Of a DNA stretch of 29,546 bases, positions 1 through 29,546 are shown one piece after another. Both the position numbers and the translations under genes were made by a program. This DNA is from Paramoeba atlantica (taxonomy: Eukaryota > Protista > Discosea), in the NCBI GenBank assembly GCA_977017575.1, contig CDRNVI010000162.1, positions 1 to 29,546 on the forward strand. The letters are read 5' to 3'. The notes below the pieces were generated by a model. The model made no database searches. It was given only the letters and a program-made list of their open reading frames with translations, and had not been told where the DNA came from. Position 1 is the first letter of the stretch. Each line of letters starts with the position of its first letter.

Positions 1-510
1 AGAGTTTCATAAATATTTGCCGTATAAATTTTTTACTCAAATTTTTTTATCAAGGAAATCAAAATTAATTTAATGAATTAGCCGTATTTTTGGAATAAAA
101 AAAATTCCATTAAAATATCGAACACATTCATAAAAAAAATTTTAGAACCTAGATAAAAATTAGTAAATAAATTTATATAAAACCAAATATTAAAAACTCA
201 AGAATATTAAAAAATAAAAATTAAATTTATAAAAAGTTTTCAATTCACCTAATTCTTTAGTCGATAAATTATGTTTACCCAATTAATAATTTATGTCTAA
301 GAATGAAAATTAAAATTAAAATTTAATAGTTTTAAAACTATAAATATAAATTTATAACTTACTAATCATTGAAATTAAAAAAAATAATTTCGAAATGATT
401 TGAAAAGTATAAATTAAAAATTTAAAAGTTTAAAATTTAAAATTAAAATTTAAATTTATTTTTAGTCGATAAATTATGTTTACCCAATTAATAATTTATG
501 TCTAAAAACT

Positions 511-830
511 AAAGAACAAGCATAGTTTAGTCTTATTCCGTGTTAAGTCCTCAACCCTTAAGTCGGACTTGTCACTACATTTTATATTCTAACTTTATTT
601 ACTTAAAATTAACCTAAGAATAAATTTTAGAGTATAAAGCTGAATATATTCCACTGACCCTCGACCTAGTTCATTTTTATCTTTACTTATTTTTATTTTC
701 ACAATAGCAATAGAAAAACTAATTTATTTTTTATAATTTTATTAAACTTTTTTTTATTTACTTTAGCTCCTTGAACACAATAATCCGCAAAACTAAATCT
801 AAAAGATTAATTAAAAATTATGAAAATAAA
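511..830 (+). repeat. Dispersed repeat block B (copies 511-830, 3358-3678, partial 7434-7626, diverged 7641-7875)
   Basis: Near-identical text beginning aaagaacaagcatagtttagtcttattccgtgttaagtcc. Each of the three near-identical copies directly follows a 215-bp-repeat core. Confidence 0.92.
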
Positions 831-924
831 ACACAAAAACATCAGTACAAAGTCCTGTATTTTCGCCATTTAAAAATCGCGAAAAAATTTTTACATGCTC
901 TCCAGATTTATTTAATTTTTTATT

Positions 925-1003
925 CACGATTTTATTGGAAAAATAACACTACGAAAGCGATTCAAAAAAATTCGCATCAGTGTTAAATTTCCAACAAAAA
1001 CGG
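925..1003. repeat. Representative of the dispersed TGGAAA..TTTCCA hairpin family (near-identical copies 12843-12921, 13929-14007, 14116-14194)
   Basis: Arms ttttattggaaaaataacact / agtgttaaatttccaacaaaa flank an inner gcga..A-run..tcgc stem. Confidence 0.9.
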
Positions 1004-1054
1004 AATAAATAAATTACATAATCTAGAAAGCAATGTAAAAATTCGTATTAACCT

Positions 1055-2225
1055 TTTGTCCTTTTACAACTCATTGGGAACACCTCCATTGCCAAAAAAG
1101 TATGGAAGTGCCCCCAAATTCTGTTGGAAAAGTAGCACTAAAAAATTTGAAATTTGAAAAGATTTTTTACATGTTCTCACGATGTGTTTTCTGTTGGAAA
1201 ATTAACTGTGTTTACTTGAAAAATAGCAAAGTAACACATGTTAAATTTCCTACAGAAATCACGATCTGGAGATCAAAGTAAAAACTCCAGTATCCTCGTC
1301 CTTTTGCAACCCATTTGGGTGGGTACCATCCAAAAAATGATGGAAAACACCATCCGAAAAAAAGATGGAAACCCACCAAATTCTGTTGGAAAAATGACGG
1401 TAAATTTTCAATTTACAAATATTTTTCGTCATGTTTCTCGCTGATTATGTAAAACGTCGAAGAAAACGACTTCTATAAAAATACTTCTGCCGGAAAAAAG
1501 CTCAAAACAGCGCATTTTTTTCGGCAGGCGGCATTTTTAAAAAGTCACTTTCTCCGAGGTTTTTCGACAAAACATCGAAAACATTTTTTACATGATCTGC
1601 AGATGTATTTTTTTGTTGGAAAATTAACTGTGTTCGCTTGAAAAATAGCAAAGGAACACATGTTAAATTTCCTACAAAACTACGATCTGGAGATCAAAGT
1701 AAAAACGATAGTATCCTTGTCCTTTTGCAACCCATTTGGGTGGGTACCATCCAAAAAATGATGGAAAACACCATCCGAAAAAAAGATGGAAACCCACCAA
1801 ATTCTGTTGGAAAAATGACGGTAAATTTTCAATTTACAAATATTTTTCGTCATGTTTCTCGCTGATTATGTAAAAACGTCGAAGAAAACGACTTCTATAA
1901 AAATACTTCTGCCGGAAAAATCTCAAAACAGCGCATTTTTTTCGGCAGGCGGCATTTTTAAAAAGTCACTTTCTCCGAGGTTTTTCGACAAAACAGCGAA
2001 AACATTTTTTACATGATCTGCAGATGTATTTTTTTGTTGGAAAATTAACTGTGTTCGCTTGAAAAATAGCAAAGGAACACATGTTAAATTTCCTACAAAA
2101 CTACGATCTGGAGATCAAAGTAAAAATTATAGTATCTTTGTCCTTTTGCAACTCATTGGGGCACCACCAAAAAAATGATGGAAACACCCCAAATTTTGTT
2201 GGAAAATGACACTGAAATTTTCAAT
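1055..2225 (+). repeat. ~421-bp tandem repeat (two full copies ~1189-1610 and ~1611-2031, partial copies on both sides)
   Basis: gttggaaaattaactgtg at 1193, 1615 and 2036. The duplicated ORF-track peptides end at 1444 and 1865 (offset 421). Confidence 0.92.
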
Positions 2226-2300
2226 TTGCAGATTTATTTTTTACAACTTTTCGTCGATTTCTAACAATCGTCGTAGAAAATGACTTTTTTTCCTTTTTTT

Positions 2301-2575
2301 TACACGATTCTGTTGGAAAATGACAGTGTAAGTCGGTAAAAAAACCTTCCTCACTTTTATTTTCAACAAAAACGGTTAAAAATAGGGAAAAAAATCTATT
2401 TCTCCGAGGATTTTTAGAAAAAGCCAAAATGCTCATTTTGGAGAGTTCCAGCTGAAAATGGCCGTTGTGTTCTTCCTTTTTTTTAACACGATTCTGTTGG
2501 AAAATGACAGTGCAAGTCGGTAAAAAAACCTTCCTCACTTTTATTTCCAACAAAAACGGTTAAAAATAGGGAAAA
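2301..2575 (+). repeat. Duplicated hairpin element (2301-2390, 2486-2575; third copy 10546-10630)
   Basis: acacgattctgttggaaaatgacagtg(t/c)aagtcggtaaaaaaaccttcctcactt..caacaaaaacggttaaaaat occurs three times. Confidence 0.9.
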
Positions 2576-2817
2576 ACACAGTGCCCTTTAGCGGACACTC
2601 CAATATGAGATTTTTAACTTCATTTTCCGATATGTCATCTGCTTTGTACCAAAATCCGATGGTCGATTATCGATAAAAAGAGTTAAAAATTAAAAAATAA
2701 AAAGTTCTATAAATTTTAATTTACCTAATATATAAAATTTATTAACCTTTCTGTTTATTATTTTATGTTTGTTTTCTATGAATGTAACATTTCCGATATG
2801 TTATCTTCTTTGTACCA

Positions 2818-3188
2818 AAATCAGATGTCGATTATCGTACATGTTCATTACATGAAAACAACATAGATACAATAAACAAGAAAGAATCATTAAAAGTATT
2901 TAATAAAATTATTATAAGATCAATAAATTTTTTTACCCAATCAAAATTAAATTGAACAATAATAAATTATATAAATAATTTTAATAAAAAACATTATATT
3001 TAATTTTACTTTTTTTCGTGGGCTATAATAAAGTGGTATAACCTTTTATTCTCAGCATTTCTTTTAGCGAGTTCCTTTAAATAATGGGAACGCTATAACG
3101 AAATGTTTCCCACGAAAAATAAGAATATATTCTATTTTATTATTATGTTTTCATGTAATGAACATGTACGATAATCAACATCGGATTT
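2818..3188. repeat. Nested inverted repeats (43-bp outer arms, 11-bp and imperfect inner stems)
   Basis: 2818-2860 is the reverse complement of 3146-3188 with 2 mismatches. tttttcgtggg 3012-3022 pairs with cccacgaaaaa 3109-3119. An inner hairpin spans 3056-3105. Confidence 0.85.
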
Positions 3189-3782
3189 GAGGTAAAAGAA
3201 CACTCAATCCTTATAGTTGCTTAATCTGTATGTTTTATTACGAAAACAATATAATAAAAAGTAAAATTAAAATAAAATGAAAATTAAAATTAAAATTTAA
3301 ATTTATTTTTAGTCGATAAATTATGTTTACCCAATTAATAATTTATGTCTAAAAATTAAAGAACAAGCATAGTTTAGTCTTATTCCGTGTTAAGTCCTCA
3401 ACCCTTAAGTCGGACTTGTCACTGCATTTTATATTCTAGCTTTATTTACTTAAAATTAACCTAAGAATAAATTTTAAAGTATAAAGCTGAATATATTCCA
3501 CTGACCCTCGACCTAGTTCATTTTTATCTTTACTTATTTTTATTTCCACAATAGCAATAGAAAAACTAATTTATTTTTTATAATTCTATTAAACTTTTTT
3601 TTATTTACTTTAGCTCCTTGAACACAACAATCCGCAAAACTAAATCTAAAAGATTAATTAAAAATTATGAAAATAAAATAGATACAAAATCAAAGTTTTT
3701 AAGCCTCGTCTTAGAATAAATAAAAACTTATCTAAATTCACCAACTCTATTTTTTATAAAAAAATATAAAAATATGAGTCGG

Positions 3783-4520
3783 ATGATTTTAGAGAGTTTA
3801 TGTTTATTCTGAAGCTCCTGTATTCATCACATGAATGTTCTGATCAGGAGTTTGTATAGGGTTTTTAACCCTACAAACCTACAGCTTCAAAACATGAATG
3901 AATTGAATAACATTTTCAATGTCCTGTGCTTACTGGCTCTGATTGGATAAATCTTATCAGATGCACAGAGCACAGTGTATTCAAATTCATCGTTCCTATT
4001 ACTCTCTGTTTCTTTGGTTCATTCTAAGTGAAGTTCTGTTGTTTGGCTCGTTACTTTACGTACTCAACTATACAAACTTAACTTCTCTTGAATTCATTCC
4101 TTTTCACTTTTTACCTTTAGAATTCTCGCAAGCGATCCTTCATTCCTTTTGCTCCTTTAATTTTGTTGCCTTCGACCTAACAAGTGTCGTGGCAAATTCT
4201 TGATTTCTTGCTGCCTCAGGCACGACAGCTAACGCTTGTCTCTACTCGATGGCCGTAAACTGGCACATCTTCGAGAACATCCATCGCCTATATTCCGTTA
4301 CATTGGCATGAATTTTCATATGCCATCAATGAACGGAATTTTATTCTTTTCCTATAACCGCTAACACAAACACCTGTTGCTCTTCCTCCATATGCCTAGA
4401 ATCTGTTCATTTCATTCATTTGATCTTAGGCTGTGGAGCCTTTTTCTGCTTAAAAAAGGAAAAAGGGGAGGCAGGTGATTTGGGGGGTAGCGGTTTGAGG
4501 ATGTGATGATTCTTGTTTAA
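3783..4520 (+). CDS. cox3: Cytochrome c oxidase subunit 3 cryptogene, kinetoplastid-type (TGA=Trp; 5' frameshift edit; pre-edited 3' domain ~4451-4520)
   Basis: With TGA=Trp the frame runs from 3793 through the homologous region without TAA/TAG (8 in-frame TGA between 3832 and 4330). It gives RVYVYS..FLWFILSEVLLFGSLLYV (Glu at 4030)..SLEF..ANSWFLAASGTTAN..HQWTEF..HFIHLILG (4408-4431). These match trypanosomatid COIII motifs FLWFIISE, INTFLLFVSGLFVN, NQVWEF and HFSHVFLG, with similar spacing. The last helix (YWHxVD) is recoverable only by U insertion. The 3' end (TAA 4518-4520) is approximate. Confidence 0.9.
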
Positions 4521-4550
4521 AAGAAAAGACGAATCATCAAAGAATAAAAG

Positions 4551-5010
4551 ATGGGAGTTTTTGTGAGATTTGTAGGAGAGTGCGATGATGTTTCAGCCTT
4601 CTGCTATCCTCATTACTAGTGATGAAGGTTACCCAATGCTTCCCACTAGTATTCGGATTCGCATCCTGCAAACACATGGATGCGATCTGATTTATTTTAG
4701 GGAGCTTCATATTAGTAATACTTGTATTTCGCTTAATTATGTTGTTATTTGGACATAATGAATTATGTTTTGATTTAATACGTATGGGCAGGGTAGAGGA
4801 ACGAGGATAGAGGGATAGAGGTAGAGGTTAGAGGTGAACGATGCAGCTGAGATAATGAGATGAGATGGTAAAGGGGAGCTTAGGTACGACACAACGAGGG
4901 CGGGAAGTTGTGTGAGTACCTGGACGCTATATTGAGGTTGGGGCGGAGATGTAGGTGAATGTGTCAAGTATGTGAGATGTGGGACGCATCGTGATGCTTC
5001 AAGGGGAGAG
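4551..5010 (+). CDS. cox2: Cytochrome c oxidase subunit 2 cryptogene (unedited core ~4586-4783; pre-edited 5' end and pre-edited C-terminal half)
   Basis: The unedited frame 4586-4783 reads WCFSLLLSSLLVMK..FASCKHMDAIWFILGSFILVILVFRLIMLLFGHNELCFDLIR. This is collinear with trypanosomatid COII (..DFISSKFIDTYWFVLG..LLRLCLLLYF..FDLCK). The following G/A-rich 4784-5010 decodes by U editing to IVGFQWYW, YLIGDLRILQ, KLWVSxVDVIHSFT, DCIPGR and YGQCSEICGxxHxxMP. The start ATG at 4551 and the end at ~5008-5010 are inferred. Confidence 0.88.
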
Positions 5011-5199
5011 ATCTGCGATTAAAAGCTGCCCATACGAAAATCAAAAAAATAACATCAAAATTTCCCAAAAATAAACAGAGTTAAATTTTATTATCACATA
5101 TTTTTTTAATACCTGTAATTTATTAAATATTTAATTACAAAAATAATTTAAAATATTATCTATAAATAACCGTATAATAAAAAATAGTAGTTAAAAAAA

Positions 5200-7430
5200 T
5201 TAAACTTAAATTAAAATTAAAATTTAAAAGTTTTAAAACTATAAATATAAATTTATAACTTATTAATCATTGAAATTAAAAAAAATTAATTTCGAAATGA
5301 TTTAAAAAGTATAAAAATTAAAAATTTAAAAGTTTAAAATTTAAAATTAAAATTTAAATTTATTTTTAGTCGATAAATTATGTTTACCCAATTAATAATT
5401 TATGTCTAAAAATTAGCAAGAAACAAGAATAAAATTAAAATCAAAATTTAACAATTTTAAAACTATAAATATAAATTTATAACTTACTAATCATTGAAAT
5501 TAAAAAAAGTAATTTCAAAATGATTTAAAAAGTATAAATTAAAAATTTAAAAGTTTAAAATTTAAAATTAAAATTTAAATTTATTTTTAGTCGATAAATT
5601 ATGTTTACCCAATTAATAATTTATGTCTAAAAATTTTTACAAAATTAGCAAAAGTAATAAATTAAAATTAAAATTTAAAAGTTTTAAAAGTATAAATTAG
5701 CTGGTACAAAAATGGTAAGTTTCTCTGCCGGAAATCCACCGAAAAGACGGTTTTTCCGGCGCAAACTCCAATTTTGTTACCAACCGGTACAAAAAGGGTA
5801 GTCTCCCTGCCGGAAATCCACCGAAAAGACGGTTTTTCCGGAGGGAACTCCCATTTTGTTACCTATAATTTATAACTTACTAATCATTGAAATTAAAAAA
5901 AATAATTTCGAAATGATTTGAAAAGTATAAATTAAAAATTTAAAAGTTTAAAATTTAAAATTAAAATTTAAATTTATTTTTAGTCGATAAATTATGTTTA
6001 CCCAATTAATAATTTATGTCTAAAAATTTTAAAGCACAAAATTAAAATTAAAATTTAAAAGTTTTAAAACTATAAATATAAATTTATAACTTACTAATCA
6101 TTGAAATTAAAAAAAATTAATTTCGAAATGATTTGAAAAGTATAAATTAAAAATTTAAAAGTTTAAAATTTAAAATTAAAATTTAAATTTATTTTTAGTC
6201 GATAAATTATGTTTACACAATTAATAATTTATGTCTAAAAATTTTAAAGAATAAAATTAAAATTAAAATTTAAAAATTTTAAAACTATAAATATAAATTT
6301 ATAACTTACTAATCATTGAAATTAAAAAAAATAATTTCGAAATGATTTGAAAAGTATAAATTAAAAATTTAAAAGTTTAAAATTTAAAATTAAAATTTAA
6401 ATTTATTTTTAGTCGATAAATTATGTTTACACAATTAATAATTTATGTCTAAAAATTTTAAAGAATAAAATTAAAATTAAAATTTAAAAATTTTAAAACT
6501 ATAAATATAAATTTATAACTTACTAATCATTGAAATTAAAAAAAATAATTTCGAAATGATTTGAAAAGTATAAATTAAAAATTTAAAAGTTTAAAATTTA
6601 AAATTGAAATTTAAATTTATTTTTAGTCGATAAATTATGTTTACACAATTAATAATTTATGTCTAAAATTTTAATTAAATAATTTTATTAAACTTTTTTT
6701 TATTTACTTTAGCTACTTGAACACTACAGTTCGCTAAACTAAATCTAAAAGATTAATTAAAAATTATAAAAATTAAAAAATAAAAAACACAAAGAATAAA
6801 ATTAAAATTAAAATTTAAAAGTTTTAAAACTATAAATATAAATTTATAACTTACTAATCATTGAAATTAAAAAAAATTAATTTCGAAATGATTTGAAAAG
6901 TATAAATTAAAAATTTAAAAGTTTAAAATTTAAAATTAAAATTTAAATTTATTTTTAGTCGATAAATTATGTTTACCCAATTAATAATTTATGTCTAAAA
7001 ATTTTAAAGAACAAAATTAAAATTAAAATTTAAAAGTTTTAAAACTATAAATATAAATTTATAACTTACTAATCATTGAAATTAAAAAAAATTAATTTCG
7101 AAATGATTTGAAAAGTATAAATTAAAAATTTAAAAGTTTAAAATTTAAAATTAAAATTTAAATTTATTTTTAGTCGGTAAATTATGTTTACACAATTAAT
7201 AATTTATGTCTAAAAATTTTAAAGAACAAAATTAAAATTAAAATTTAAAAGTTTTAAAACTATAAATATAAATTTATAACTTACTAATCATTGAAATTAA
7301 AAAAAATTAATTTCGAAATGATTTGAAAAGTATAAATTAAAAATTTAAAAGTTTAAAATTTAAAATTAAAATTTAAATTTATTTTTAGTCGATAAATTAT
7401 GTTTACCCAATTAATAATTTATGTCTAAAA
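5200..7430 (+). repeat. AT-rich tandem array of ~214-215-bp units (about 9 units, one interrupted)
   Basis: Core gtcgataaattatgtttac(c/a)caattaataatttatgtc starts at 5369, 5590, 5983, 6198, 6412, 6626, 6958, 7173 and 7388. The regular spacings are 214-215 bp. Further cores occur at 260, 465, 3312, 10903, 11142 and 11319. Confidence 0.95.
5703..5863. repeat. Pair of ~80-bp GC-richer hairpin elements inserted in the AT-rich array
   Basis: 5703-5781 and 5786-5863 share ctgccggaaatccaccgaaaagacggtttttccgg. Each folds back on itself (ggtacaaaa/ttttgttacc; ccggaaa/tttccgg). Confidence 0.85.
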
Positions 7431-10208
7431 ACTAAAGAACAAGCATAGTTTAGTCTTATTCCGTGTTAAGTCCTCAACCCTTAAGTCGGACTTGTCACTA
7501 CATTTTATATTCTAACTTTATTTACTTAAAATTAACCTAAGAATAAATTTTAGAGTATAAAGCTGAATATATTCCACTGACCCTCGACCTAGTTCATTTT
7601 TATCTTTACTTATTTTTATTTTCACAAGCACTTTTACAAGAATAGTTTAGTTTAATTCCGTGTTAAATCCTCAATCCTTAAGTCGGATTTGTCACTCCAT
7701 ATACGATCAAACTTTATTTACTTAAATTTTTACAAAGATAGTAAAATTAAAAGTATAAAGATGATCTAGCTCACCAGTTTTATTTAAATTAAAATCTTAC
7801 ACAATGATTTTATATTTATAAACTACTCGCTTCCATCGACCCTCGACCTAGTTCATTTTATCTTTACTTATTTTTATTTTCCAATATTACAGGCATTTCT
7901 TGCATAAACTCGCGTTTAAATGTGATCTTATAATAATTTTAGTTTTTTCTTAACAAAACCTATAAATATTATCCAAAATAAAAAATTTAATTTGATAATA
8001 TTGAGGTTTTTTAAGCACAAAATTAATAAAGTCACTTTAAACGGCGATTTTTGGAATTTTAGTTTTCTTAGAAAAAACATATAATATTCTCCTAAATAAA
8101 AATTTTAATTTGATAATATTGATGTTTTTTTAAACACAAAATTCACGGTTCGAACCCTTTTTGTGCACTTTTTTTGGAATTTTACCACTTTTTTCCACTT
8201 TTTTTCACTTTTTTTGTCATTTTTGCGTCAAAAAATGATTAAAAAGCAGTTAAAAATAGGGAAAAAGGGCAAAAATACGACACTTTTGAGCATAAAACAA
8301 AAAAATATGCCAACGTGTCAAAAACGTGCACCAAAGTCACTCAAGAGTGACAGGTCATTTTCCGACAAAGGAAAATTCCCTAAAAAAAAACTACCAGGTG
8401 TCGAACCCCTCAAGAAATGCTGTAATATTATTTTTTTTGCCTTCAAGATCTGGAGATCATTCATTTTTATTCTAAAGACCATCGCTTTTCGCTGTTTCGA
8501 CGAAGTCAAAGCCGTTTTGCTACCTTTTTTAATCACCTGTTTTTAATTTCTAACTTTTTTGTACCAAAGACCCCCCATTTTTCCACAAAAGAGTGCAAAA
8601 AAAAAACGGGCTCTTGGACAAGCAGTTGAAAAGTCACAGTTTTTTACTAAAAAGGTAGGAAAAAGGCACGAAAAACGACGAAAAATGAAAGAAATCCAGA
8701 AAAAACGCCAAAAAAATAATAAAACAGCATGTTTTTTGTGATTTTATGTCAAATTTCCACCATAAAACGTTGCAACACCACAAATTTCTAAAAAAAATTT
8801 GAAATTATTTGTGCTTGTCTTACGTTTTGGCTGGTGCAATTTATCATAATCGAACAAAAAACAAAAAAATTTTTCACTGATTTTTGGCGACCCGACGTTT
8901 TCGGGGCAAAAAAATACGCCAAAAAATCAAAACGTAGAAAATAAAAAAATTTGGTCTACGTTTCCTGAAGGCGTGAAAAAATTTTATCAAAAAAAATTTT
9001 TTTTTTCTCGAGCAAACGAGAAAAATCAAAAAAAAAATTGACAGGCCGTTTTGTGATGATTTTAATTTTTTGCAATTTTGGAACCACGACGATTCCTGAA
9101 GTCAATCGCAAAAACCGTTCCAAAATAATTAAAATTTCACCAAAAATCTCGAAATGCTCAATCCCATGGTGACCCCTGGGTTTTTTGATGCATACGAAAT
9201 TTTTTTTTTTGTATCTTCGGCAGGCGATTTTCGAAGATAATGAATTTTTCTCTTCTTGGCCTGGAGCCGCAAATCGTGGATTTCGACCGCGGTTCCGTTT
9301 TTTTCAAAACTAAAAAAATCTTTATTTGCACGGCAAAACTCGTATTGACAATTTCTCTTATCAGGCTTTTCCTTGATAAAGCCGAGAAATTTAAATCGAA
9401 TCACGGCAAAATCTGAGATTTTGAAACAAAATGCCTGTGAACGATTTCAATAGTTTTTGTGCAACTCTAAAAAATTTTTTAAGTCCAAAGAAACATTTTT
9501 TATTGGGAAATTAGCAGTAATTTTTGTATCACCTAAAAAAACGCCTCGCGCGTCCGTATACGGGACACATATGTGCGCTCGCGTGCGCGTATGACGTGCG
9601 TCTACTACTTTTCCTTTAATTCTGCGCCTCTCATTCGACTTTTCGCCTAACAACGGGATAGGGACAAAAAAGTGACTTGGTCTCCAGATCAAAAAATCTG
9701 GAAGTCTTTTTTGCACCCGTGTTTTCGAGAAATCTTTGATAATCGCAGACTTAAAAAGGAAAAAAAAGACATCGCGAGGTGATCAAAAAAATTACAAGCC
9801 AATCAATAACAAAATGACGAAAAATCCGCAAAAACGGACTGTCACCAATTTTTATACTTTAAAATTTTAACACCCAAAAAACCCCTGTTTTCTCGTGCTT
9901 GCACACAAGTTTATACACAAAAAAATGTAAACTTGATGAAGCAATTTTCGAGAAACCCGAGTTTTTAGTGTTTATAAAATTTCAAATAATTCCCAAATAA
10001 CCCAACTTTTTTTTACAATTTTCTGTGGAAAAATAACTGCAGACACTCGAAAATATTCTGTAAAAAAACAGTAAATTTTCCTATGAGCTCTCAGTTATTT
10101 TCCAACAGAGAATTACTAAAAAAAGTAAGGGCATTTTAGGAATTAAAAACAATAAAAAATCTTCAAATAAAAGCGTTTTTGATGGAAGAATGATAAATTT
10201 ATACTTTA

Positions 10209-11290
10209 TATATAATATTTTTTACCATATTTAATTACAAAAATAATTTAAAATATAGTTTATAAATATTATTAAAAAGTATAAATAATCTCATTCACCC
10301 TCAATAAAATTCGTATTTCATAGAAATACCTCCTGCCCGAAAAAGCGCCAAAAAGCGCTTGTTCCGGCGGAAATTCGTCCACAGTTCCCTGTTTTTACAC
10401 GATTCTGTTGGAAAATGACGGTAACACCAAAAGAGGTCCGTCATACCTAACAGAAACGGCAAAACAGGAAATGTTAAACATTTTTCCGCCGGAAAATACG
10501 TCTTTTTATCATTTTCTCGGCAGGAAATTGGGAGTCCCTTTTTAACACGATTCTGTTGGAAAATGACAGTGTAAGTCGGTAAAAAAACCTTCCTCACTTC
10601 TATTCCCAACAAAAACGGTTAAAAATGGGGTTTTAAAAATCCCAATTCCTCCGTAGAAAATCGCAAAAAAAGACTCTTTTCTGGCGTAGGAGACTCAACT
10701 GCCTGGAACACGATTCTCTTGGAAAATAGCAGTGATTAGTAACATTGGATTTTGAGCCAAAAAGCATCAAATCCATTAGTTTACAATCACTGTTAATTTC
10801 CAACAGAAACGGTCCGTCTTCTCGCCCCGAATTTTGTATAAAAAACGCTTTAAATAAGAGAATTTTTATTCGTTTTATATCAAAATTTATTTTTTATTTT
10901 TAGTCGATAAATTATGTTTACCCAATTAATAATTTATGTCTAAAAATTCAAAAAATTGAAATTAAAATTAAAATTTAAAAATTCTAAAACTATAAATATA
11001 AATTTATACTTGATATATAATATTTTTTACCATATTTAATTACAAAAATAATTTAAAATATAGTTTATAAATATTATTAAAAAGTATAAATTAAAAATTT
11101 AAAAGTTTAAAATTTAAAATTAAAATTTAAATTTATTTTTAGTCGATAAATTATGTTTACCCAATTAATAATTTATGTCTAAAAATTTAAAGGACAAAAT
11201 TAAAATTAAAATTTAAAATTATATATAATATTTTTTACCATATTTAATTACAAAAATAATTTAAAATATAGTTTATAAATATTATAAAAT
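10209..11290 (+). repeat. Second AT-rich repeat zone: ~80-bp unit (10209-10285, ~11012-11090, ~11221-11286) interleaved with 215-bp-repeat cores
   Basis: atatataatattttttaccatatttaattacaaaaataatttaaaatatagtttataaatatta occurs three times. Cores are at 10903, 11142 and 11319. Confidence 0.85.
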
Positions 11291-11421
11291 TTAAAATTAA
11301 AATTTAAATTTATTTTTAGTCGATAAATTATGTTTACTCAATTAATAATTTATGTCTAAAAAAAGAAAAAATAAAAAGAGCAAGCGAAAAAGCAAGACAA
11401 AAATAAAAAGCACGGCAATTC

Positions 11422-11509
11422 CTGCTAAGATTTCTACGAAATTCAAGCAGTAAGATCATGATAAGATTTCTACGAAATTCAATCATGAAGCATACACTAT
11501 AGTGTATGC
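11422..11509. other. Twin hairpins followed by a perfect 20-bp palindrome
   Basis: ctgct-aagatttctacgaaattca-agcag (11422-11450); tcatgat-aagatttctacgaaattca-atcatga (11456-11488); gcatacactatagtgtatgc (11490-11509). Confidence 0.85.
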
Positions 11510-11727
11510 AAATTATTACAAAAATAATAATTTTAAAATTTTTTCTTCGAAATTCAAAGAAGAATTTACTTGAAAAAAAATAAATTTCTATGTTTACATA
11601 GGGGATGTAAACTGAAATTTATAATTATATTTCGTTGAATTAAGAGAATAATTAAACGAAACTGTTACTCGGCAAAAATAAGGGAATTTTTGAGTAACAG
11701 ACCGTTCAAATTGAAAACAAAAAAACA

Positions 11728-11867: not shown

Positions 11868-11869
11868 TT

Positions 11870-17300: not shown

Positions 17301-18650
17301 TCATTTTGGAGAGTTCCAGCTGAAAATGGCCGTTGTGTTCTTCCTTTTTTTTAACACGATTCTGTTGGAAAATGACAGTGCAAGTCGGTAAAAAAACCTT
17401 CCTCACTTTTATTTCCAACAAAAACGGTTAAAAATAGGGAAAAACACAGTGCCCTTTAGCGGACACTCCAATATGAGATTTTTAACTTCATTTTCCGATA
17501 TGTCATCTGCTTTGTACCAAAATCCGATGGTCGATTATCGATAAAAAGAGTTAAAAATTAAAAAATAAAAAGTTCTATAAATTTTAATTTACCTAATATA
17601 TAAAATTTATTAACCTTTCTGTTTATTATTTTATGTTTGTTTTCTATGAATGTAACATTTCCGATATGTTATCTTCTTTGTACCAAAATCAGATGTCGAT
17701 TATCGTACATGTTCATTACATGAAAACAACATAGATACAATAAACAAGAAAGAATCATTAAAAGTATTTAATAAAATTATTATAAGATCAATAAATTTTT
17801 TTACCCAATCAAAATTAAATTGAACAATAATAAATTATATAAATAATTTTAATAAAAAACATTATATTTAATTTTACTTTTTTTCGTGGGCTATAATAAA
17901 GTGGTATAACCTTTTATTCTCAGCATTTCTTTTAGCGAGTTCCTTTAAATAATGGGAACGCTATAACGAAATGTTTCCCACGAAAAATAAGAATATATTC
18001 TATTTTATTATTATGTTTTCATGTAATGAACATGTACGATAATCAACATCGGATTTGAGGTAAAAGAACACTCAATCCTTATAGTTGCTTAATCTGTATG
18101 TTTTATTACGAAAACAATATAATAAAAAGTAAAATTAAAATAAAATGAAAATTAAAATTAAAATTTAAATTTATTTTTAGTCGATAAATTATGTTTACCC
18201 AATTAATAATTTATGTCTAAAAATTAAAGAACAAGCATAGTTTAGTCTTATTCCGTGTTAAGTCCTCAACCCTTAAGTCGGACTTGTCACTGCATTTTAT
18301 ATTCTAGCTTTATTTACTTAAAATTAACCTAAGAATAAATTTTAAAGTATAAAGCTGAATATATTCCACTGACCCTCGACCTAGTTCATTTTTATCTTTA
18401 CTTATTTTTATTTCCACAATAGCAATAGAAAAACTAATTTATTTTTTATAATTCTATTAAACTTTTTTTTATTTACTTTAGCTCCTTGAACACAACAATC
18501 CGCAAAACTAAATCTAAAAGATTAATTAAAAATTATGAAAATAAAATAGATACAAAATCAAAGTTTTTAAGCCTCGTCTTAGAATAAATAAAAACTTATC
18601 TAAATTCACCAACTCTATTTTTTATAAAAAAATATAAAAATATGAGTCGG

Positions 18651-19388
18651 ATGATTTTAGAGAGTTTATGTTTATTCTGAAGCTCCTGTATTCATCACAT
18701 GAATGTTCTGATCAGGAGTTTGTATAGGGTTTTTAACCCTACAAACCTACAGCTTCAAAACATGAATGAATTGAATAACATTTTCAATGTCCTGTGCTTA
18801 CTGGCTCTGATTGGATAAATCTTATCAGATGCACAGAGCACAGTGTATTCAAATTCATCGTTCCTATTACTCTCTGTTTCTTTGGTTCATTCTAAGTGAA
18901 GTTCTGTTGTTTGGCTCGTTACTTTACGTACTCAACTATACAAACTTAACTTCTCTTGAATTCATTCCTTTTCACTTTTTACCTTTAGAATTCTCGCAAG
19001 CGATCCTTCATTCCTTTTGCTCCTTTAATTTTGTTGCCTTCGACCTAACAAGTGTCGTGGCAAATTCTTGATTTCTTGCTGCCTCAGGCACGACAGCTAA
19101 CGCTTGTCTCTACTCGATGGCCGTAAACTGGCACATCTTCGAGAACATCCATCGCCTATATTCCGTTACATTGGCATGAATTTTCATATGCCATCAATGA
19201 ACGGAATTTTATTCTTTTCCTATAACCGCTAACACAAACACCTGTTGCTCTTCCTCCATATGCCTAGAATCTGTTCATTTCATTCATTTGATCTTAGGCT
19301 GTGGAGCCTTTTTCTGCTTAAAAAAGGAAAAAGGGGAGGCAGGTGATTTGGGGGGTAGCGGTTTGAGGATGTGATGATTCTTGTTTAA
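18651..19388 (+). CDS. cox3: cox3 cryptogene, copy 2
   Basis: Corresponds to 3783-4520 at +14868 (ATG 18651, TAA 19386-19388). Confidence 0.9.
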
Positions 19389-19418
19389 AAGAAAAGACGA
19401 ATCATCAAAGAATAAAAG

Positions 19419-19878
19419 ATGGGAGTTTTTGTGAGATTTGTAGGAGAGTGCGATGATGTTTCAGCCTTCTGCTATCCTCATTACTAGTGATGAAGGTTAC
19501 CCAATGCTTCCCACTAGTATTCGGATTCGCATCCTGCAAACACATGGATGCGATCTGATTTATTTTAGGGAGCTTCATATTAGTAATACTTGTATTTCGC
19601 TTAATTATGTTGTTATTTGGACATAATGAATTATGTTTTGATTTAATACGTATGGGCAGGGTAGAGGAACGAGGATAGAGGGATAGAGGTAGAGGTTAGA
19701 GGTGAACGATGCAGCTGAGATAATGAGATGAGATGGTAAAGGGGAGCTTAGGTACGACACAACGAGGGCGGGAAGTTGTGTGAGTACCTGGACGCTATAT
19801 TGAGGTTGGGGCGGAGATGTAGGTGAATGTGTCAAGTATGTGAGATGTGGGACGCATCGTGATGCTTCAAGGGGAGAG
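19419..19878 (+). CDS. cox2: cox2 cryptogene, copy 2
   Basis: Corresponds to 4551-5010 at +14868. Confidence 0.88.
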
Positions 19879-20067
19879 ATCTGCGATTAAAAGCTGCCCA
19901 TACGAAAATCAAAAAAATAACATCAAAATTTCCCAAAAATAAACAGAGTTAAATTTTATTATCACATATTTTTTTAATACCTGTAATTTATTAAATATTT
20001 AATTACAAAAATAATTTAAAATATTATCTATAAATAACCGTATAATAAAAAATAGTAGTTAAAAAAA

Positions 20068-22298
20068 TTAAACTTAAATTAAAATTAAAATTTAAAAGTT
20101 TTAAAACTATAAATATAAATTTATAACTTATTAATCATTGAAATTAAAAAAAATTAATTTCGAAATGATTTAAAAAGTATAAAAATTAAAAATTTAAAAG
20201 TTTAAAATTTAAAATTAAAATTTAAATTTATTTTTAGTCGATAAATTATGTTTACCCAATTAATAATTTATGTCTAAAAATTAGCAAGAAACAAGAATAA
20301 AATTAAAATCAAAATTTAACAATTTTAAAACTATAAATATAAATTTATAACTTACTAATCATTGAAATTAAAAAAAGTAATTTCAAAATGATTTAAAAAG
20401 TATAAATTAAAAATTTAAAAGTTTAAAATTTAAAATTAAAATTTAAATTTATTTTTAGTCGATAAATTATGTTTACCCAATTAATAATTTATGTCTAAAA
20501 ATTTTTACAAAATTAGCAAAAGTAATAAATTAAAATTAAAATTTAAAAGTTTTAAAAGTATAAATTAGCTGGTACAAAAATGGTAAGTTTCTCTGCCGGA
20601 AATCCACCGAAAAGACGGTTTTTCCGGCGCAAACTCCAATTTTGTTACCAACCGGTACAAAAAGGGTAGTCTCCCTGCCGGAAATCCACCGAAAAGACGG
20701 TTTTTCCGGAGGGAACTCCCATTTTGTTACCTATAATTTATAACTTACTAATCATTGAAATTAAAAAAAATAATTTCGAAATGATTTGAAAAGTATAAAT
20801 TAAAAATTTAAAAGTTTAAAATTTAAAATTAAAATTTAAATTTATTTTTAGTCGATAAATTATGTTTACCCAATTAATAATTTATGTCTAAAAATTTTAA
20901 AGCACAAAATTAAAATTAAAATTTAAAAGTTTTAAAACTATAAATATAAATTTATAACTTACTAATCATTGAAATTAAAAAAAATTAATTTCGAAATGAT
21001 TTGAAAAGTATAAATTAAAAATTTAAAAGTTTAAAATTTAAAATTAAAATTTAAATTTATTTTTAGTCGATAAATTATGTTTACACAATTAATAATTTAT
21101 GTCTAAAAATTTTAAAGAATAAAATTAAAATTAAAATTTAAAAATTTTAAAACTATAAATATAAATTTATAACTTACTAATCATTGAAATTAAAAAAAAT
21201 AATTTCGAAATGATTTGAAAAGTATAAATTAAAAATTTAAAAGTTTAAAATTTAAAATTAAAATTTAAATTTATTTTTAGTCGATAAATTATGTTTACAC
21301 AATTAATAATTTATGTCTAAAAATTTTAAAGAATAAAATTAAAATTAAAATTTAAAAATTTTAAAACTATAAATATAAATTTATAACTTACTAATCATTG
21401 AAATTAAAAAAAATAATTTCGAAATGATTTGAAAAGTATAAATTAAAAATTTAAAAGTTTAAAATTTAAAATTGAAATTTAAATTTATTTTTAGTCGATA
21501 AATTATGTTTACACAATTAATAATTTATGTCTAAAATTTTAATTAAATAATTTTATTAAACTTTTTTTTATTTACTTTAGCTACTTGAACACTACAGTTC
21601 GCTAAACTAAATCTAAAAGATTAATTAAAAATTATAAAAATTAAAAAATAAAAAACACAAAGAATAAAATTAAAATTAAAATTTAAAAGTTTTAAAACTA
21701 TAAATATAAATTTATAACTTACTAATCATTGAAATTAAAAAAAATTAATTTCGAAATGATTTGAAAAGTATAAATTAAAAATTTAAAAGTTTAAAATTTA
21801 AAATTAAAATTTAAATTTATTTTTAGTCGATAAATTATGTTTACCCAATTAATAATTTATGTCTAAAAATTTTAAAGAACAAAATTAAAATTAAAATTTA
21901 AAAGTTTTAAAACTATAAATATAAATTTATAACTTACTAATCATTGAAATTAAAAAAAATTAATTTCGAAATGATTTGAAAAGTATAAATTAAAAATTTA
22001 AAAGTTTAAAATTTAAAATTAAAATTTAAATTTATTTTTAGTCGGTAAATTATGTTTACACAATTAATAATTTATGTCTAAAAATTTTAAAGAACAAAAT
22101 TAAAATTAAAATTTAAAAGTTTTAAAACTATAAATATAAATTTATAACTTACTAATCATTGAAATTAAAAAAAATTAATTTCGAAATGATTTGAAAAGTA
22201 TAAATTAAAAATTTAAAAGTTTAAAATTTAAAATTAAAATTTAAATTTATTTTTAGTCGATAAATTATGTTTACCCAATTAATAATTTATGTCTAAAA
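20068..22298 (+). repeat. AT-rich ~215-bp tandem array, copy 2
   Basis: Corresponds to 5200-7430 at +14868. Confidence 0.95.
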
Positions 22299-25200
22299 AC
22301 TAAAGAACAAGCATAGTTTAGTCTTATTCCGTGTTAAGTCCTCAACCCTTAAGTCGGACTTGTCACTACATTTTATATTCTAACTTTATTTACTTAAAAT
22401 TAACCTAAGAATAAATTTTAGAGTATAAAGCTGAATATATTCCACTGACCCTCGACCTAGTTCATTTTTATCTTTACTTATTTTTATTTTCACAAGCACT
22501 TTTACAAGAATAGTTTAGTTTAATTCCGTGTTAAATCCTCAATCCTTAAGTCGGATTTGTCACTCCATATACGATCAAACTTTATTTACTTAAATTTTTA
22601 CAAAGATAGTAAAATTAAAAGTATAAAGATGATCTAGCTCACCAGTTTTATTTAAATTAAAATCTTACACAATGATTTTATATTTATAAACTACTCGCTT
22701 CCATCGACCCTCGACCTAGTTCATTTTATCTTTACTTATTTTTATTTTCCAATATTACAGGCATTTCTTGCATAAACTCGCGTTTAAATGTGATCTTATA
22801 ATAATTTTAGTTTTTTCTTAACAAAACCTATAAATATTATCCAAAATAAAAAATTTAATTTGATAATATTGAGGTTTTTTAAGCACAAAATTAATAAAGT
22901 CACTTTAAACGGCGATTTTTGGAATTTTAGTTTTCTTAGAAAAAACATATAATATTCTCCTAAATAAAAATTTTAATTTGATAATATTGATGTTTTTTTA
23001 AACACAAAATTCACGGTTCGAACCCTTTTTGTGCACTTTTTTTGGAATTTTACCACTTTTTTCCACTTTTTTTCACTTTTTTTGTCATTTTTGCGTCAAA
23101 AAATGATTAAAAAGCAGTTAAAAATAGGGAAAAAGGGCAAAAATACGACACTTTTGAGCATAAAACAAAAAAATATGCCAACGTGTCAAAAACGTGCACC
23201 AAAGTCACTCAAGAGTGACAGGTCATTTTCCGACAAAGGAAAATTCCCTAAAAAAAAACTACCAGGTGTCGAACCCCTCAAGAAATGCTGTAATATTATT
23301 TTTTTTGCCTTCAAGATCTGGAGATCATTCATTTTTATTCTAAAGACCATCGCTTTTCGCTGTTTCGACGAAGTCAAAGCCGTTTTGCTACCTTTTTTAA
23401 TCACCTGTTTTTAATTTCTAACTTTTTTGTACCAAAGACCCCCCATTTTTCCACAAAAGAGTGCAAAAAAAAAACGGGCTCTTGGACAAGCAGTTGAAAA
23501 GTCACAGTTTTTTACTAAAAAGGTAGGAAAAAGGCACGAAAAACGACGAAAAATGAAAGAAATCCAGAAAAAACGCCAAAAAAATAATAAAACAGCATGT
23601 TTTTTGTGATTTTATGTCAAATTTCCACCATAAAACGTTGCAACACCACAAATTTCTAAAAAAAATTTGAAATTATTTGTGCTTGTCTTACGTTTTGGCT
23701 GGTGCAATTTATCATAATCGAACAAAAAACAAAAAAATTTTTCACTGATTTTTGGCGACCCGACGTTTTCGGGGCAAAAAAATACGCCAAAAAATCAAAA
23801 CGTAGAAAATAAAAAAATTTGGTCTACGTTTCCTGAAGGCGTGAAAAAATTTTATCAAAAAAAATTTTTTTTTTCTCGAGCAAACGAGAAAAATCAAAAA
23901 AAAAATTGACAGGCCGTTTTGTGATGATTTTAATTTTTTGCAATTTTGGAACCACGACGATTCCTGAAGTCAATCGCAAAAACCGTTCCAAAATAATTAA
24001 AATTTCACCAAAAATCTCGAAATGCTCAATCCCATGGTGACCCCTGGGTTTTTTGATGCATACGAAATTTTTTTTTTTGTATCTTCGGCAGGCGATTTTC
24101 GAAGATAATGAATTTTTCTCTTCTTGGCCTGGAGCCGCAAATCGTGGATTTCGACCGCGGTTCCGTTTTTTTCAAAACTAAAAAAATCTTTATTTGCACG
24201 GCAAAACTCGTATTGACAATTTCTCTTATCAGGCTTTTCCTTGATAAAGCCGAGAAATTTAAATCGAATCACGGCAAAATCTGAGATTTTGAAACAAAAT
24301 GCCTGTGAACGATTTCAATAGTTTTTGTGCAACTCTAAAAAATTTTTTAAGTCCAAAGAAACATTTTTTATTGGGAAATTAGCAGTAATTTTTGTATCAC
24401 CTAAAAAAACGCCTCGCGCGTCCGTATACGGGACACATATGTGCGCTCGCGTGCGCGTATGACGTGCGTCTACTACTTTTCCTTTAATTCTGCGCCTCTC
24501 ATTCGACTTTTCGCCTAACAACGGGATAGGGACAAAAAAGTGACTTGGTCTCCAGATCAAAAAATCTGGAAGTCTTTTTTGCACCCGTGTTTTCGAGAAA
24601 TCTTTGATAATCGCAGACTTAAAAAGGAAAAAAAAGACATCGCGAGGTGATCAAAAAAATTACAAGCCAATCAATAACAAAATGACGAAAAATCCGCAAA
24701 AACGGACTGTCACCAATTTTTATACTTTAAAATTTTAACACCCAAAAAACCCCTGTTTTCTCGTGCTTGCACACAAGTTTATACACAAAAAAATGTAAAC
24801 TTGATGAAGCAATTTTCGAGAAACCCGAGTTTTTAGTGTTTATAAAATTTCAAATAATTCCCAAATAACCCAACTTTTTTTTACAATTTTCTGTGGAAAA
24901 ATAACTGCAGACACTCGAAAATATTCTGTAAAAAAACAGTAAATTTTCCTATGAGCTCTCAGTTATTTTCCAACAGAGAATTACTAAAAAAAGTAAGGGC
25001 ATTTTAGGAATTAAAAACAATAAAAAATCTTCAAATAAAAGCGTTTTTGATGGAAGAATGATAAATTTATACTTTATATATAATATTTTTTACCATATTT
25101 AATTACAAAAATAATTTAAAATATAGTTTATAAATATTATTAAAAAGTATAAATAATCTCATTCACCCTCAATAAAATTCGTATTTCATAGAAATACCTC

Positions 25201-26595
25201 CTGCCCGAAAAAGCGCCAAAAAGCGCTTGTTCCGGCGGAAATTCGTCCACAGTTCCCTGTTTTTACACGATTCTGTTGGAAAATGACGGTAACACCAAAA
25301 GAGGTCCGTCATACCTAACAGAAACGGCAAAACAGGAAATGTTAAACATTTTTCCGCCGGAAAATACGTCTTTTTATCATTTTCTCGGCAGGAAATTGGG
25401 AGTCCCTTTTTAACACGATTCTGTTGGAAAATGACAGTGTAAGTCGGTAAAAAAACCTTCCTCACTTCTATTCCCAACAAAAACGGTTAAAAATGGGGTT
25501 TTAAAAATCCCAATTCCTCCGTAGAAAATCGCAAAAAAAGACTCTTTTCTGGCGTAGGAGACTCAACTGCCTGGAACACGATTCTCTTGGAAAATAGCAG
25601 TGATTAGTAACATTGGATTTTGAGCCAAAAAGCATCAAATCCATTAGTTTACAATCACTGTTAATTTCCAACAGAAACGGTCCGTCTTCTCGCCCCGAAT
25701 TTTGTATAAAAAACGCTTTAAATAAGAGAATTTTTATTCGTTTTATATCAAAATTTATTTTTTATTTTTAGTCGATAAATTATGTTTACCCAATTAATAA
25801 TTTATGTCTAAAAATTCAAAAAATTGAAATTAAAATTAAAATTTAAAAATTCTAAAACTATAAATATAAATTTATACTTGATATATAATATTTTTTACCA
25901 TATTTAATTACAAAAATAATTTAAAATATAGTTTATAAATATTATTAAAAAGTATAAATTAAAAATTTAAAAGTTTAAAATTTAAAATTAAAATTTAAAT
26001 TTATTTTTAGTCGATAAATTATGTTTACCCAATTAATAATTTATGTCTAAAAATTTAAAGGACAAAATTAAAATTAAAATTTAAAATTATATATAATATT
26101 TTTTACCATATTTAATTACAAAAATAATTTAAAATATAGTTTATAAATATTATAAAATTTAAAATTAAAATTTAAATTTATTTTTAGTCGATAAATTATG
26201 TTTACTCAATTAATAATTTATGTCTAAAAAAAGAAAAAATAAAAAGAGCAAGCGAAAAAGCAAGACAAAAATAAAAAGCACGGCAATTCCTGCTAAGATT
26301 TCTACGAAATTCAAGCAGTAAGATCATGATAAGATTTCTACGAAATTCAATCATGAAGCATACACTATAGTGTATGCAAATTATTACAAAAATAATAATT
26401 TTAAAATTTTTTCTTCGAAATTCAAAGAAGAATTTACTTGAAAAAAAATAAATTTCTATGTTTACATAGGGGATGTAAACTGAAATTTATAATTATATTT
26501 CGTTGAATTAAGAGAATAATTAAACGAAACTGTTACTCGGCAAAAATAAGGGAATTTTTGAGTAACAGACCGTTCAAATTGAAAACAAAAAAACA

Positions 26596-26735
26596 ATTTG
26601 CACGGCAATTCTTGGGGTTTTTACGCCTCACGGCTTCGTGATCGGATAAAGAGCAGGAGCGAGAGCAAGAGTTTGTAGGCGGTAGATGATATAGGTGTTC
26701 CCGGTGCGAGTTTATTTTTTCTCTATATTCCTTAG
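26596..26735 (+). CDS. rps12: Probable rps12 cryptogene, copy 2
   Basis: Corresponds to 11728-11867 at +14868. Confidence 0.55.
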
Positions 26736-26737
26736 TT

Positions 26738-26978
26738 GTGGCAATTTGGGATAGCGAAGTAAAATTTTTAAAGTTTGCTATCGACAATTGCTCTTCTCTT
26801 TTTTATTTTGCCGCACATCGCTAATTGATCCCAATAGACGATTGCATTAAGAAAGGATCGTTAACTTCACTATATGAACAGACATAAGATTCAGTAAGAT
26901 CCATTCATATCTCTCTGCTTCTTTTAATGGCCTGTAGCATACTCCCCATTTCCACAATCCGTATGCGCTCAGACCTAT
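26738..26978 (+). rRNA. Possible LSU rRNA fragment, copy 2
   Basis: Corresponds to 11870-12110 at +14868. Confidence 0.3.
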
Positions 26979-29546
26979 ATACCCGCGCCTCGTCGCGTGT
27001 GTAAGGCGTGCGCGAGATCATCGCTCACGCCGGCGCGCGTGTCCGAGTTCAGCAAGGATTTTTGCTAAAATCCGGGGGAGCTGAATCTTCTTACGCTCGC
27101 GCGAGAAAATTTTTCCAACAAAATTAATTTTCTCGTTTACGTCAAAAATCCTACAGACCAAAATTTACTCTTTCAAATTTCCCAAAAAAAAGAAATGTAA
27201 GGTATGCCGTTTTCCGAGTGAAGGGTCTACCGGAAAGTTGGCGCCTTATCTTTCTTTTTTTGTATAATTTTTAAGGCATTTTGGTGCCAGAGATTTTTGA
27301 CAGAATTCCTGAACTCCCACGCAGGGATACGTACGCGATCGAATGACGCGCGTGAGAAGTTTTTTTTGTAGGAAGGTGACTGGCCCAAAAAAGCGGCACG
27401 CGGGCCAAGTCATTTTCCAACAAAAAAATCCATTCGCGCGCGCAGGATCCCTAACGCGGCCGGATCGTGCACGCGAGTATCCCTGAAAATTTGCACGATT
27501 TTATTGGAAAATTAGCAGTGTAAAAGTGGTCAAAAAAAGACTCACATTCACTGCTGATTTCCAGTAAAAACGGCAATTCGTGCGCCCTATTGGAAAACTG
27601 ATAGTGCGTGGCTGTCAAAAAAGCCTGCCATCACTGTCACATTTCCTATAGTAGTTCAGTATTTTGCATGATTTTGTAGGAAAAATAACAGTGCGTAAAT
27701 TTTTATTATTCACGATTTTATTGGAAAAATAACACTACGAAAGCGATTCAAAAAAATTCGCATCAGTGTTAAATTTCCAACAAAAACGGAATAAATAAAA
27801 TTACATCCCTGTTAATTTTCCAACACAAACAGCAAAATAAAGGCACTATTTTGTTGGAAAATAACAGTGAATTTTCACACGATGCTCTTGGAAAAATTAC
27901 AGTGAGAAAAAAATAAGACTCACTGATTTTTCCAATAGCAAACGGTTCCAATACTGATAAATTTCCAACAAAACATACAAAAAAAAGTGAAAAAATTGCA
28001 AATTTCCCAAATATCGGAAGTTTTACTAGATTATCTGTTGGAAATTTAACGGGTACCCTCCGAAAAAACGCCGGGTCGACTCCGTTAGTTTTCCTACAGT
28101 CAGTAACCCTTCCTGCAAAAAAAATCGCCACCCCCGAATAAAGAATCGAATTGGCGAATTTCTTTGTGGGAAAATTAGCAGTAAAATTTTCATGTTACAA
28201 TCATAAAAATGCAATAGAAAAAATTCCTTACAGGAAAATACACGGCAAAAATTGATTCCCAAATTTTTAGCCTGTGCCGGAAATTTTCTTCGTCGCTCGA
28301 TTTGTTTCGGAGGCAAAAAACGAAACAAAAACGAAAATTCTACTGTAGATTTTCCTGTAAGGAAATTTTCTATTTTACATTTACAAATCCGTCAATCAGG
28401 ATTTAGATTGTAAATCAAAATTTAAAATTTTTCCACACTTAATTTTTTCACTAAACTGTTGGAAAAATGACTGTAAAAAAAATTAACAAAAATAAATTTT
28501 TTTTCTAAAAACACAGTCAATTTTACAATACAGCTAAGGGAAAAAATTAACAAGGTTTTGAAACTCTCATCAGTAAATGTAACTGTAAATGACCTATTTT
28601 TTTATCACGTTTTTGTGTAGGAAAATTATCGCTAAAAGGCTTATAAAAAAATAACCCAATTTATAGCGTTAAGTTTCCAACAAAACGGATCAAAAAAAAG
28701 ATACATACCAGTTAATTTTCCTGATAAGAGAGCAAAACCTAAATCTATTTACACGATTTTTGTTGGCAAAATCACAGTGCATGATTTTATATCTATCACG
28801 ATTTTATTGGAAACATAACACTATGAAAGCGATTCAAACAAATTCGCATCAGTGTTAAATTTCCAAAAAAAACGGATCCACATAAAATACAAGCACAGTA
28901 GAAATTCCAACAAAAAACGGAAAACGATAAATTTTTTTGCACGATTTTATTGGAAAATGTAGTTATCATAAATTTTTACTATTCACGATTTTATTGGAAA
29001 AATAACACTACGAAAGCGATTTAAAAAAATTCGCATCAGTGTTAAATTTCCAACAAAAACGGAATAAATAAAAATAAACGATACTAACAAATTTCCAATA
29101 AATAACGGCAAAAGAAAAGGCTTTTTTGGTCCATTTTGTTGGATAAACGACAGTGTCTTGATTTATTTTAGTTTCCCGCACGATTTCTTGGAAAAATCAC
29201 AGAAAACGGCCTGCAAACATAAATCAATTACAGTCAATTTCCCAACAAAATACAAAAAACCCGTTTAATCTTATATAAAACGCCGGAAGTTTTTCAACTT
29301 TTTAGATTTTAATGTCTCCGAAAAACGCCCAAAAACAGGCTGTCGACGAAAATCTCCTACGTTTTCTACCGCGCGGACGTGTCAGATTAAACCCTATTAT
29401 GACGAACGGATGCGCGATCGCGCGCACGCTGTGCACGTTCGTGTTAGGATTTCTAAACCTATAAATCTTAATCCAAAGGAGGATTTTTGAAATCCTAACG
29501 GTGAGCATACGGCAATTTTTTACATGGAACTCGAAAAATACGGTTC

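Follow-up and report, generated by a model that had tools for sequence, protein, structure and literature searches.

The physical organisation of kinetoplast DNA (kDNA), the mitochondrial DNA of kinetoplastids, has been an open question in the prokinetoplastids since 2015, and the stretch analysed here raises it again: what kind of molecule carries cox3 and cox2 and no other gene that can be recognised, and is written almost twice, head to tail? This stretch, referred to throughout as the window, is contig CDRNVI010000162.1 of assembly GCA_977017575.1 from Paramoeba atlantica, taken at its full length of 29,546 nucleotides. We consider it reasonably probable that the window represents a circular-mapping 14,868-bp kDNA chromosome of an early-branching kinetoplastid, gene-poor and part of a multipartite genome. 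The unit would have been written almost twice either as a small circle or as a head-to-tail concatemer, and cox3 and cox2, adjacent and on one strand, would be its only recognisable genes. Both would need uridine (U) insertion/deletion editing at their ends, with the whole CuA half of cox2 encrypted. The remaining ~90% would be non-coding and made up of a satellite, three copies of a repeat block (block B), a 421-bp tandem repeat and co-oriented hairpins, and cox1, cob, atp6 and the rRNAs would lie on other mitochondrial molecules. Transcription would be polycistronic and proceed from one strand.

We begin with the periodicity, which is exact. When the window is compared with itself at an offset of 14,868, all of the comparable positions match (14,678/14,678), and at other offsets between 14,800 and 14,950 identity never exceeds 50%. 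The window holds 1.987 exact head-to-tail copies of the 14,868-bp unit, and the apparently exact repeat described in the initial annotation is thus borne out by exact alignment of the copies. The unit is 28% G+C, with a + strand that is rich in A and C almost throughout. A second linearisation is available in contig ctg3782c (40,689 bp) of ENA assembly ERZ24900291, in which the array of the window is found again and extends over about 2.74 units; 28.2 kb of this contig were read directly. Window 8787-29443 recurs with 100% identity in one part of the ENA contig (locus L001). Another part (locus L003), which reaches one contig end, matches window 1274-14810 in all but three places (window 3289, 3602 and 4555), at each of which the contig lacks one nucleotide of a short single-base run. 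On the contig cox3 occurs three times, at intervals of 14,867 and 14,868 bp, the third of these identical places being reported, not displayed. The cut points of the two linearisations differ, the window being cut at unit position 1 and the ENA contig at 1274, and no foreign flank occurs in the 29.5-kb window or in the 28.2 kb read of the ENA contig. Taken together, the different cut points and the lack of foreign flank argue against a linear monomer with fixed ends.

Of the two genes in the unit, cox3 is established. A 260-codon open reading frame (ORF; 3793-4572) appears once TGA is read as Trp, and its unedited core (3793-4449; ~657 nt, 219 codons) contains nine in-frame TGA codons read as Trp and no TAA or TAG. 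In the ESM atlas, an 86-residue piece of the product retrieved COX3 in all of its named hits (100/100). The code-4 product of the window cox3 itself (P0001) came back from an exhaustive representative search together with a relative at 46% (P0003), and a word-indexed profile search gave a second relative at 35% (P0009). When a profile of these three sequences was run against the PDB, each of the 21 chains matched was COX3 (best E 2.8e-5), and the matches were collinear over ~190 positions. Neither Pfam, nor phmmer searches of the PDB, nor a word-indexed protein search yielded a match for short stop-free pieces of cox3 or cox2. Downstream of the core, the 3' domain of cox3 is G-rich and T-poor. 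Its letters, once stripped of T, are identical over 35 to those of a relative (locus L002), though the T counts differ, and the T-richer version of this stretch in L002 reads through as a COX3-like helix 7. A T-stripped skeleton that is shared while T content differs is the comparative signature of U-insertion/deletion editing, as read here from DNA.

The second gene, cox2, lies directly 3' of cox3 on the same strand (the cox3 3' domain ends at ~4525 and cox2 begins at ~4530), and its identity is well supported. A composition scan finds G-rich, T-poor stretches at 4416-4612 and 4747-5029 flanking the cores, and the 190-nt unedited cox2 core sits between two such purine skeletons. In another relative, locus L004, which comes from an unrelated ENA assembly, a homologous core directly follows cox3, i.e. 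the cox3-cox2 linkage is common to both. The T-stripped 3' skeleton of cox2 scores 104 against L004, compared with 43.4 ± 6.9 for shuffles (maximum 68), and just 45 when T is retained. The cupredoxin/CuA half of cox2 would be hidden in this 3' pan-edited domain. We addressed this with a protein-guided decoder, written for the analysis, which allows free or penalised insertion and deletion of U. Decoding window 4884-5004 against the CuA segment of bovine COX2, used as an approximate target, gave a score of 178.8 as against 148.2 ± 5.5 for shuffles (z=5.6, shuffle maximum 162.8), and the decode restores the H...C.E.CG..H..M pattern. The same stretch decoded against an S12 target, as a negative control, gave z=0.6, and for the cox2 core the ESM atlas was uninformative. 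The initial annotation had called both genes, had placed editing at both gene ends and had assigned the DNA to a kinetoplastid-type mitochondrion. The two gene calls hold, as do the predicted editing of the ends, where purine skeletons flank the cores and are conserved in relatives while T differs, and the assigned origin, to which TGA=Trp and the same conservation of skeletons point.

Further observations concern these two genes. A cox2 assignment downstream of cox3 in L002 was tried and dropped, its alignment being unconvincing. Window 4610-4625, within the unedited cox2 core, is a 16-nt self-complementary stretch with 2 G:U pairs. The 1-nt deletion at window 4555 (L003:3280), which belongs to the terminal copy on the ENA contig, falls in a G run and joins the cox3 and cox2 core frames, and gene calling on this copy yielded a 296-aa 'fusion' protein (P0005). 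TGA codons occur in every gene called on this contig. The deletion is probably a consensus error at the contig end, real heteroplasmy being the alternative.

Together, cox3 and cox2 amount to ~1.25 kb, or 8% of the unit, so that the small coding share claimed at the outset holds, but its third component, a probable rps12, is unconfirmed. The skeleton in question (Table 1) was decoded, over window 11715-11880, against the core of E. coli S12, a bacterial reference that limits the power of the test, which gave z=2.0 under a T-free model and z=1.3 under a T-aware model, with z=1.4 for a wrong-target control. The decode is no better than shuffles or than that of a wrong protein, which leaves the skeleton a putative rps12 at most; the test shows that purine skeletons are easily 'decoded' into anything. 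As for other genes, the unit contains no further long code-4 ORF besides cox3 and cox2, the next longest consisting of repeats, and no ORF for cox1 or cob. Nor does it contain, beyond these two genes, a T-poor skeleton of at least 300 nt, the size expected for atp6. In the window, ARAGORN finds no tRNA genes, and no rRNA was found by Rfam at E<=10, by the peptidyl-transferase motif or by a 530-loop pattern, the only returns being hairpin-driven miRNA noise. The universal minicircle sequence GGGGTTGGTGTA, which marks the replication origin in kDNA circles of the trypanosomatid type, is absent from the window even when 2 mismatches are allowed. The lack of cox1, cob and rRNA in the unit, which had been noticed from the outset, thus persists through code-4 ORF, Rfam and motif searches. 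As far as is known, no aerobic eukaryote studied lacks mitochondrially encoded cox1 and cob. Since both are absent from the unit, they should lie on other mitochondrial DNA, and we strongly infer a multipartite genome.

Several points nevertheless weigh against a small circular-mapping chromosome with sister molecules. The sequence would fit a monomer circle just as well as a concatemer or an array within a larger molecule. The window and the ENA contig may share source reads, which bears on the independence of the second linearisation. Sister molecules were found neither by a protein search with the backbone ORF family nor by a hairpin-pattern scan or a cox3-profile scan of Joint Genome Institute (JGI) metagenomes, and no cox3 words were found in a 2015 RNA run under the same species label. 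Of the multipartite circle or concatemer put forward in the initial annotation, the two linearisations, with different cuts and more than one unit each, agree with the circle or concatemer, but sister circles sharing the backbone were not found.

The 14.9-kb unit could instead be the tandem-array domain of a far larger mitochondrial molecule, a megacircle or a long linear DNA, that bears cox1, cob, atp6 and the rRNAs elsewhere. In its favour, neither linearisation contains a whole number of units (1.99 and 2.74, both more than one), and each breaks off within the array; in Trypanoplasma borreli the guide-RNA genes are found on long molecules that have tandem repeats at their ends (PMC9679448), and Perkinsela kDNA totals ~120 Mbp, of unknown structure (PMC6334171). 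We regard this arrangement as unlikely, given that no junction to other sequence occurs in the 29.5-kb window or in 28.2 kb of the ENA contig, that identical copies suit high-copy circles or rolling-circle products and that the precedents in Prokinetoplastina are small circular-mapping molecules. A separate issue is whether the doubling exists in the cell at all. It may have arisen entirely during assembly, from a 14.9-kb monomer circle, with no cellular concatemer, which would be a sub-case of the small chromosome and affects its physical form only. The exact identity of the copies and the different places at which two assemblies cut the circle are in keeping with an artefact, as are the three differences in the ENA terminal copy, all 1-nt deletions in single-base runs like contig-end consensus errors; 2.74 units in one contig, on the other hand, exceed the usual overlap duplication, and we hold an artefact to be possible but somewhat doubtful. 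It is very improbable that the window is an array of nuclear mitochondrial copies (NUMTs) or a diplonemid-type chromosome with a single gene fragment. Nothing specific favours either, tandem NUMT arrays being present in some eukaryotes and many gene-poor small circles in diplonemids, whereas neither the window nor 28.2 kb of the ENA contig shows a nuclear flank, cox3 keeps an intact frame with its nine TGA=Trp codons, and the skeletons are conserved with relatives. Furthermore, cox3 is near-complete (219 codons unedited) and not a module of 40-540 nt, and it is linked to a second gene.

We thus return to the circular-mapping chromosome of a multipartite genome and compare it with known systems. 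The trypanosomatid maxicircle is one circle of 20-40 kb, with ~18 protein genes and the 9S and 12S rRNAs in a conserved cluster. Like it, the window has cryptogenes, TGA=Trp and extensive repetitive non-coding sequence and lacks tRNA genes, but its genes number two, perhaps three, and both rRNA and the universal minicircle sequence are missing. In diplonemids each circle bears one gene fragment, with products that are trans-spliced, and the circles add up to a huge total mass of mitochondrial DNA. With these the window shares the character of a small, gene-poor circular chromosome dominated by non-coding 'constant' sequence, but it has two near-complete genes side by side.

As for the organism, we tentatively assign the unit to a Perkinsela-like prokinetoplastid inhabiting a paramoebid amoeba, which is the most likely source. 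The six mitochondrial genes of Perkinsela sp. were recovered on three scaffolds whose ends consist of short tandem repeats and which resisted joining (David et al. 2015, mBio, PMC4669381); a later summary describes these as three linear contigs capped by telomere-like sequence (Tikhonenkov et al. 2021, PMC7859406). The short tandem repeats bounding the gene regions of Perkinsela broke short-read assemblies (PMC4669381). The window is like Perkinsela in having very few genes, AT-rich DNA, no recognisable rRNA and gene regions bounded by short tandem repeats (PMC4669381), and also in having cox3 and cox2 with separate 5' and 3' domains edited by U insertion/deletion (PMC4669381, Table 1 there). 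The layout of cox2 (5' edited domain, core and 3' edited domain) is 55 + ~204 + 227 nt in Perkinsela (PMC4669381, Table 1 there) versus ~59 + 192 + 240 nt in the window. Two differences weigh against the assignment. In both published Perkinsela strains, cox1 is linked to cox2 in opposite orientation and cob to rps12-cox3 (PMC4669381, Fig. 2 legend), whereas in the window cox3 is followed by cox2. The unedited cox3 core is ~657 nt in the window versus ~522 nt in Perkinsela. The different linkage and the longer cox3 core thus mark it as another lineage and keep the assignment to Perkinsela tentative. Topology differs as well: that of Perkinsela was unknown and later given as linear with telomere-like ends, whereas the window unit closes on itself exactly.

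Papus ankaliazontas, on the other hand, has several circular-mapping maxicircles of a few to ~14 kb, each with 1-4 genes and non-coding sequence (Tikhonenkov et al. 2021, PMC7859406). The likeness lies in a prokinetoplastid with editing by U insertion/deletion and a circular-mapping molecule of 1-4 genes, of which the window has two confirmed; the difference lies in a total of 14 genes in Papus, including complex I, most of them pan-edited (PMC7859406). The Papus circles come from short-read seed-and-extend assembly, which, as their authors caution, may have closed them artificially; the Papus chromosomes have a documented common backbone (PMC7859406). The split maxicircle of the initial annotation is a less novel idea than it seemed, as split circular-mapping maxicircles had already been proposed for Papus and the Perkinsela genes had already been placed on three unjoinable scaffolds. 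We found no long-read description of mitochondrial molecules of the Perkinsela or Papus type in the literature searched.

What the window adds can be set against the ~120 Mbp of mitochondrial DNA that Perkinsela maintains for six genes. A self-closing unit with satellite and blocks beside cox3-cox2 raises the possibility that the 'ends' of the Perkinsela scaffolds are internal satellites of circular-mapping or concatemeric chromosomes. Block B, the satellite and the hairpin motif provide a testable template, or probe, for finding the remaining chromosomes. With these in hand, one could ask whether kinetoplastids inherited a split maxicircle from their ancestor and whether it is connected with the state seen in diplonemids.

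Table 1. Coordinates of the features in the window, given for the first copy of the unit where they lie within it
Feature	Position	Strand	Details	Basis
Complete repeat unit, copy 1	1..14868	+		exact period, composition profile
Repeat unit, copy 2	14869..29546	+	ends at unit position 14,678	listed features recur at +14,868
cox3	~3775-4525	+	short 5' edited stretch; unedited core 3793-4449; 3' purine-skeleton (pre-edited) domain ~4450-4525	
cox2	~4530-5020	+	5' edited ~4530-4588; unedited transmembrane core ~4589-4780; 3' pan-edited ~4781-5020	
G-rich, T-poor skeleton, rps12 candidate of the initial annotation	11728..11867	+		composition scan
Block B, copy 1	408..848	+	~440 bp	repeat families D3, D8, D11
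Block B, copy 2	3255..3695	+	immediately upstream of cox3	repeat families
Block B, copy 3	7331..7700	+	partial, with one more copy of the 65-nt D11 element	repeat families
AT-rich satellite	5059..7450	+	~215-bp units, immediately 3' of cox2; also at 222-671, 10874-11474	
G+C-rich insert within the 215-bp satellite	5703-5863	+	82 bp x2, each unit an internal inverted repeat	
421-bp tandem repeat	1156..2188	+	2.5 copies, each with hairpin elements	repeat search
Hairpin cluster 1	923..2562	+		
Hairpin cluster 2	10007..10815	+		
Hairpin cluster 3	12479..14388	+	densest	

Outside the genes, the unit is occupied by several families of repeats. The copies of block B are 90-100% identical, and one of them ends ~65 nt before cox3; the block may be a promoter, an origin or a 'conserved region'. 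The three clusters contain ~15-25 imperfect hairpins of 70-120 nt. Their outer arms are conserved (CACGATTyTrTTGGAAAA ... TTTCCAACArAAACGG), and their interiors vary in sequence and length yet stay paired, with loops that are A-rich on the + strand. Folded as single-stranded DNA, 10 of the 12 hairpins fold far better than dinucleotide shuffles (z -3.1 to -7.8), a judgement made on single-sequence folds, MAFFT and RNAalifold having been unable to align the variable interiors. The asymmetric arm motifs are distributed 13 to 0 and 9 to 0 between the gene strand and the other. Every hairpin is thus co-oriented with cox3 and cox2. We take this strand specificity as a sign that the hairpins act in transcripts or in single-stranded intermediates of replication and are not inert palindromes. 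Among the possible roles, we favour that of signals for processing a polycistronic transcript made from one strand, or that of structures formed by single-stranded DNA during replication.

The hairpins also bear on where the guide RNAs for cox3 and cox2 might be encoded. When decoded cox3 and cox2 segments and anchor zones were compared with the unit for complementarity, G:U pairs included, no signal rose above reversed-sequence controls, a weak negative given that the true edited sequences are unknown. Published edited fragments of Perkinsela CCAP1560/4 compared with the unit, and T-stripped hairpin arms compared with the genes, likewise gave nothing above controls. Skeleton-only alignment of guide RNAs is without discriminating power, real and reversed sequences scoring alike. 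The guides for the genes of this chromosome are probably encoded elsewhere. A bolder proposal is that the hairpin cassettes are genes or processing units of a new class of small mitochondrial RNA, for instance hairpin-precursor guide RNAs for the genes of other chromosomes. We think this a long shot; if true, the chromosome would merge the functions of maxicircle and minicircle.

Two minor observations come from other sources. In Supplement File S3 of the Perkinsela study (PMC4669381), three guide-RNA candidates of strain CCAP1560/4, for atp6, cox1 and cox3, share constant flanks around a ~20-nt variable core. The paper itself reports no flanking motif common to the guide RNAs (PMC4669381), and the constant flanks have no match in the window. 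The other concerns L004, in which the region upstream of its cox3 (L004:650-1050, minus strand) is purine-rich and T-poor on the strand opposite to that gene and looks like a pan-edited cryptogene. Beyond it, at L004:1-600, lie ~25-nt tandem units that begin, on that minus strand, with CACGATTCTG. These are the same 10 letters that open many of the hairpins in the window, a coincidence that may be due to chance.

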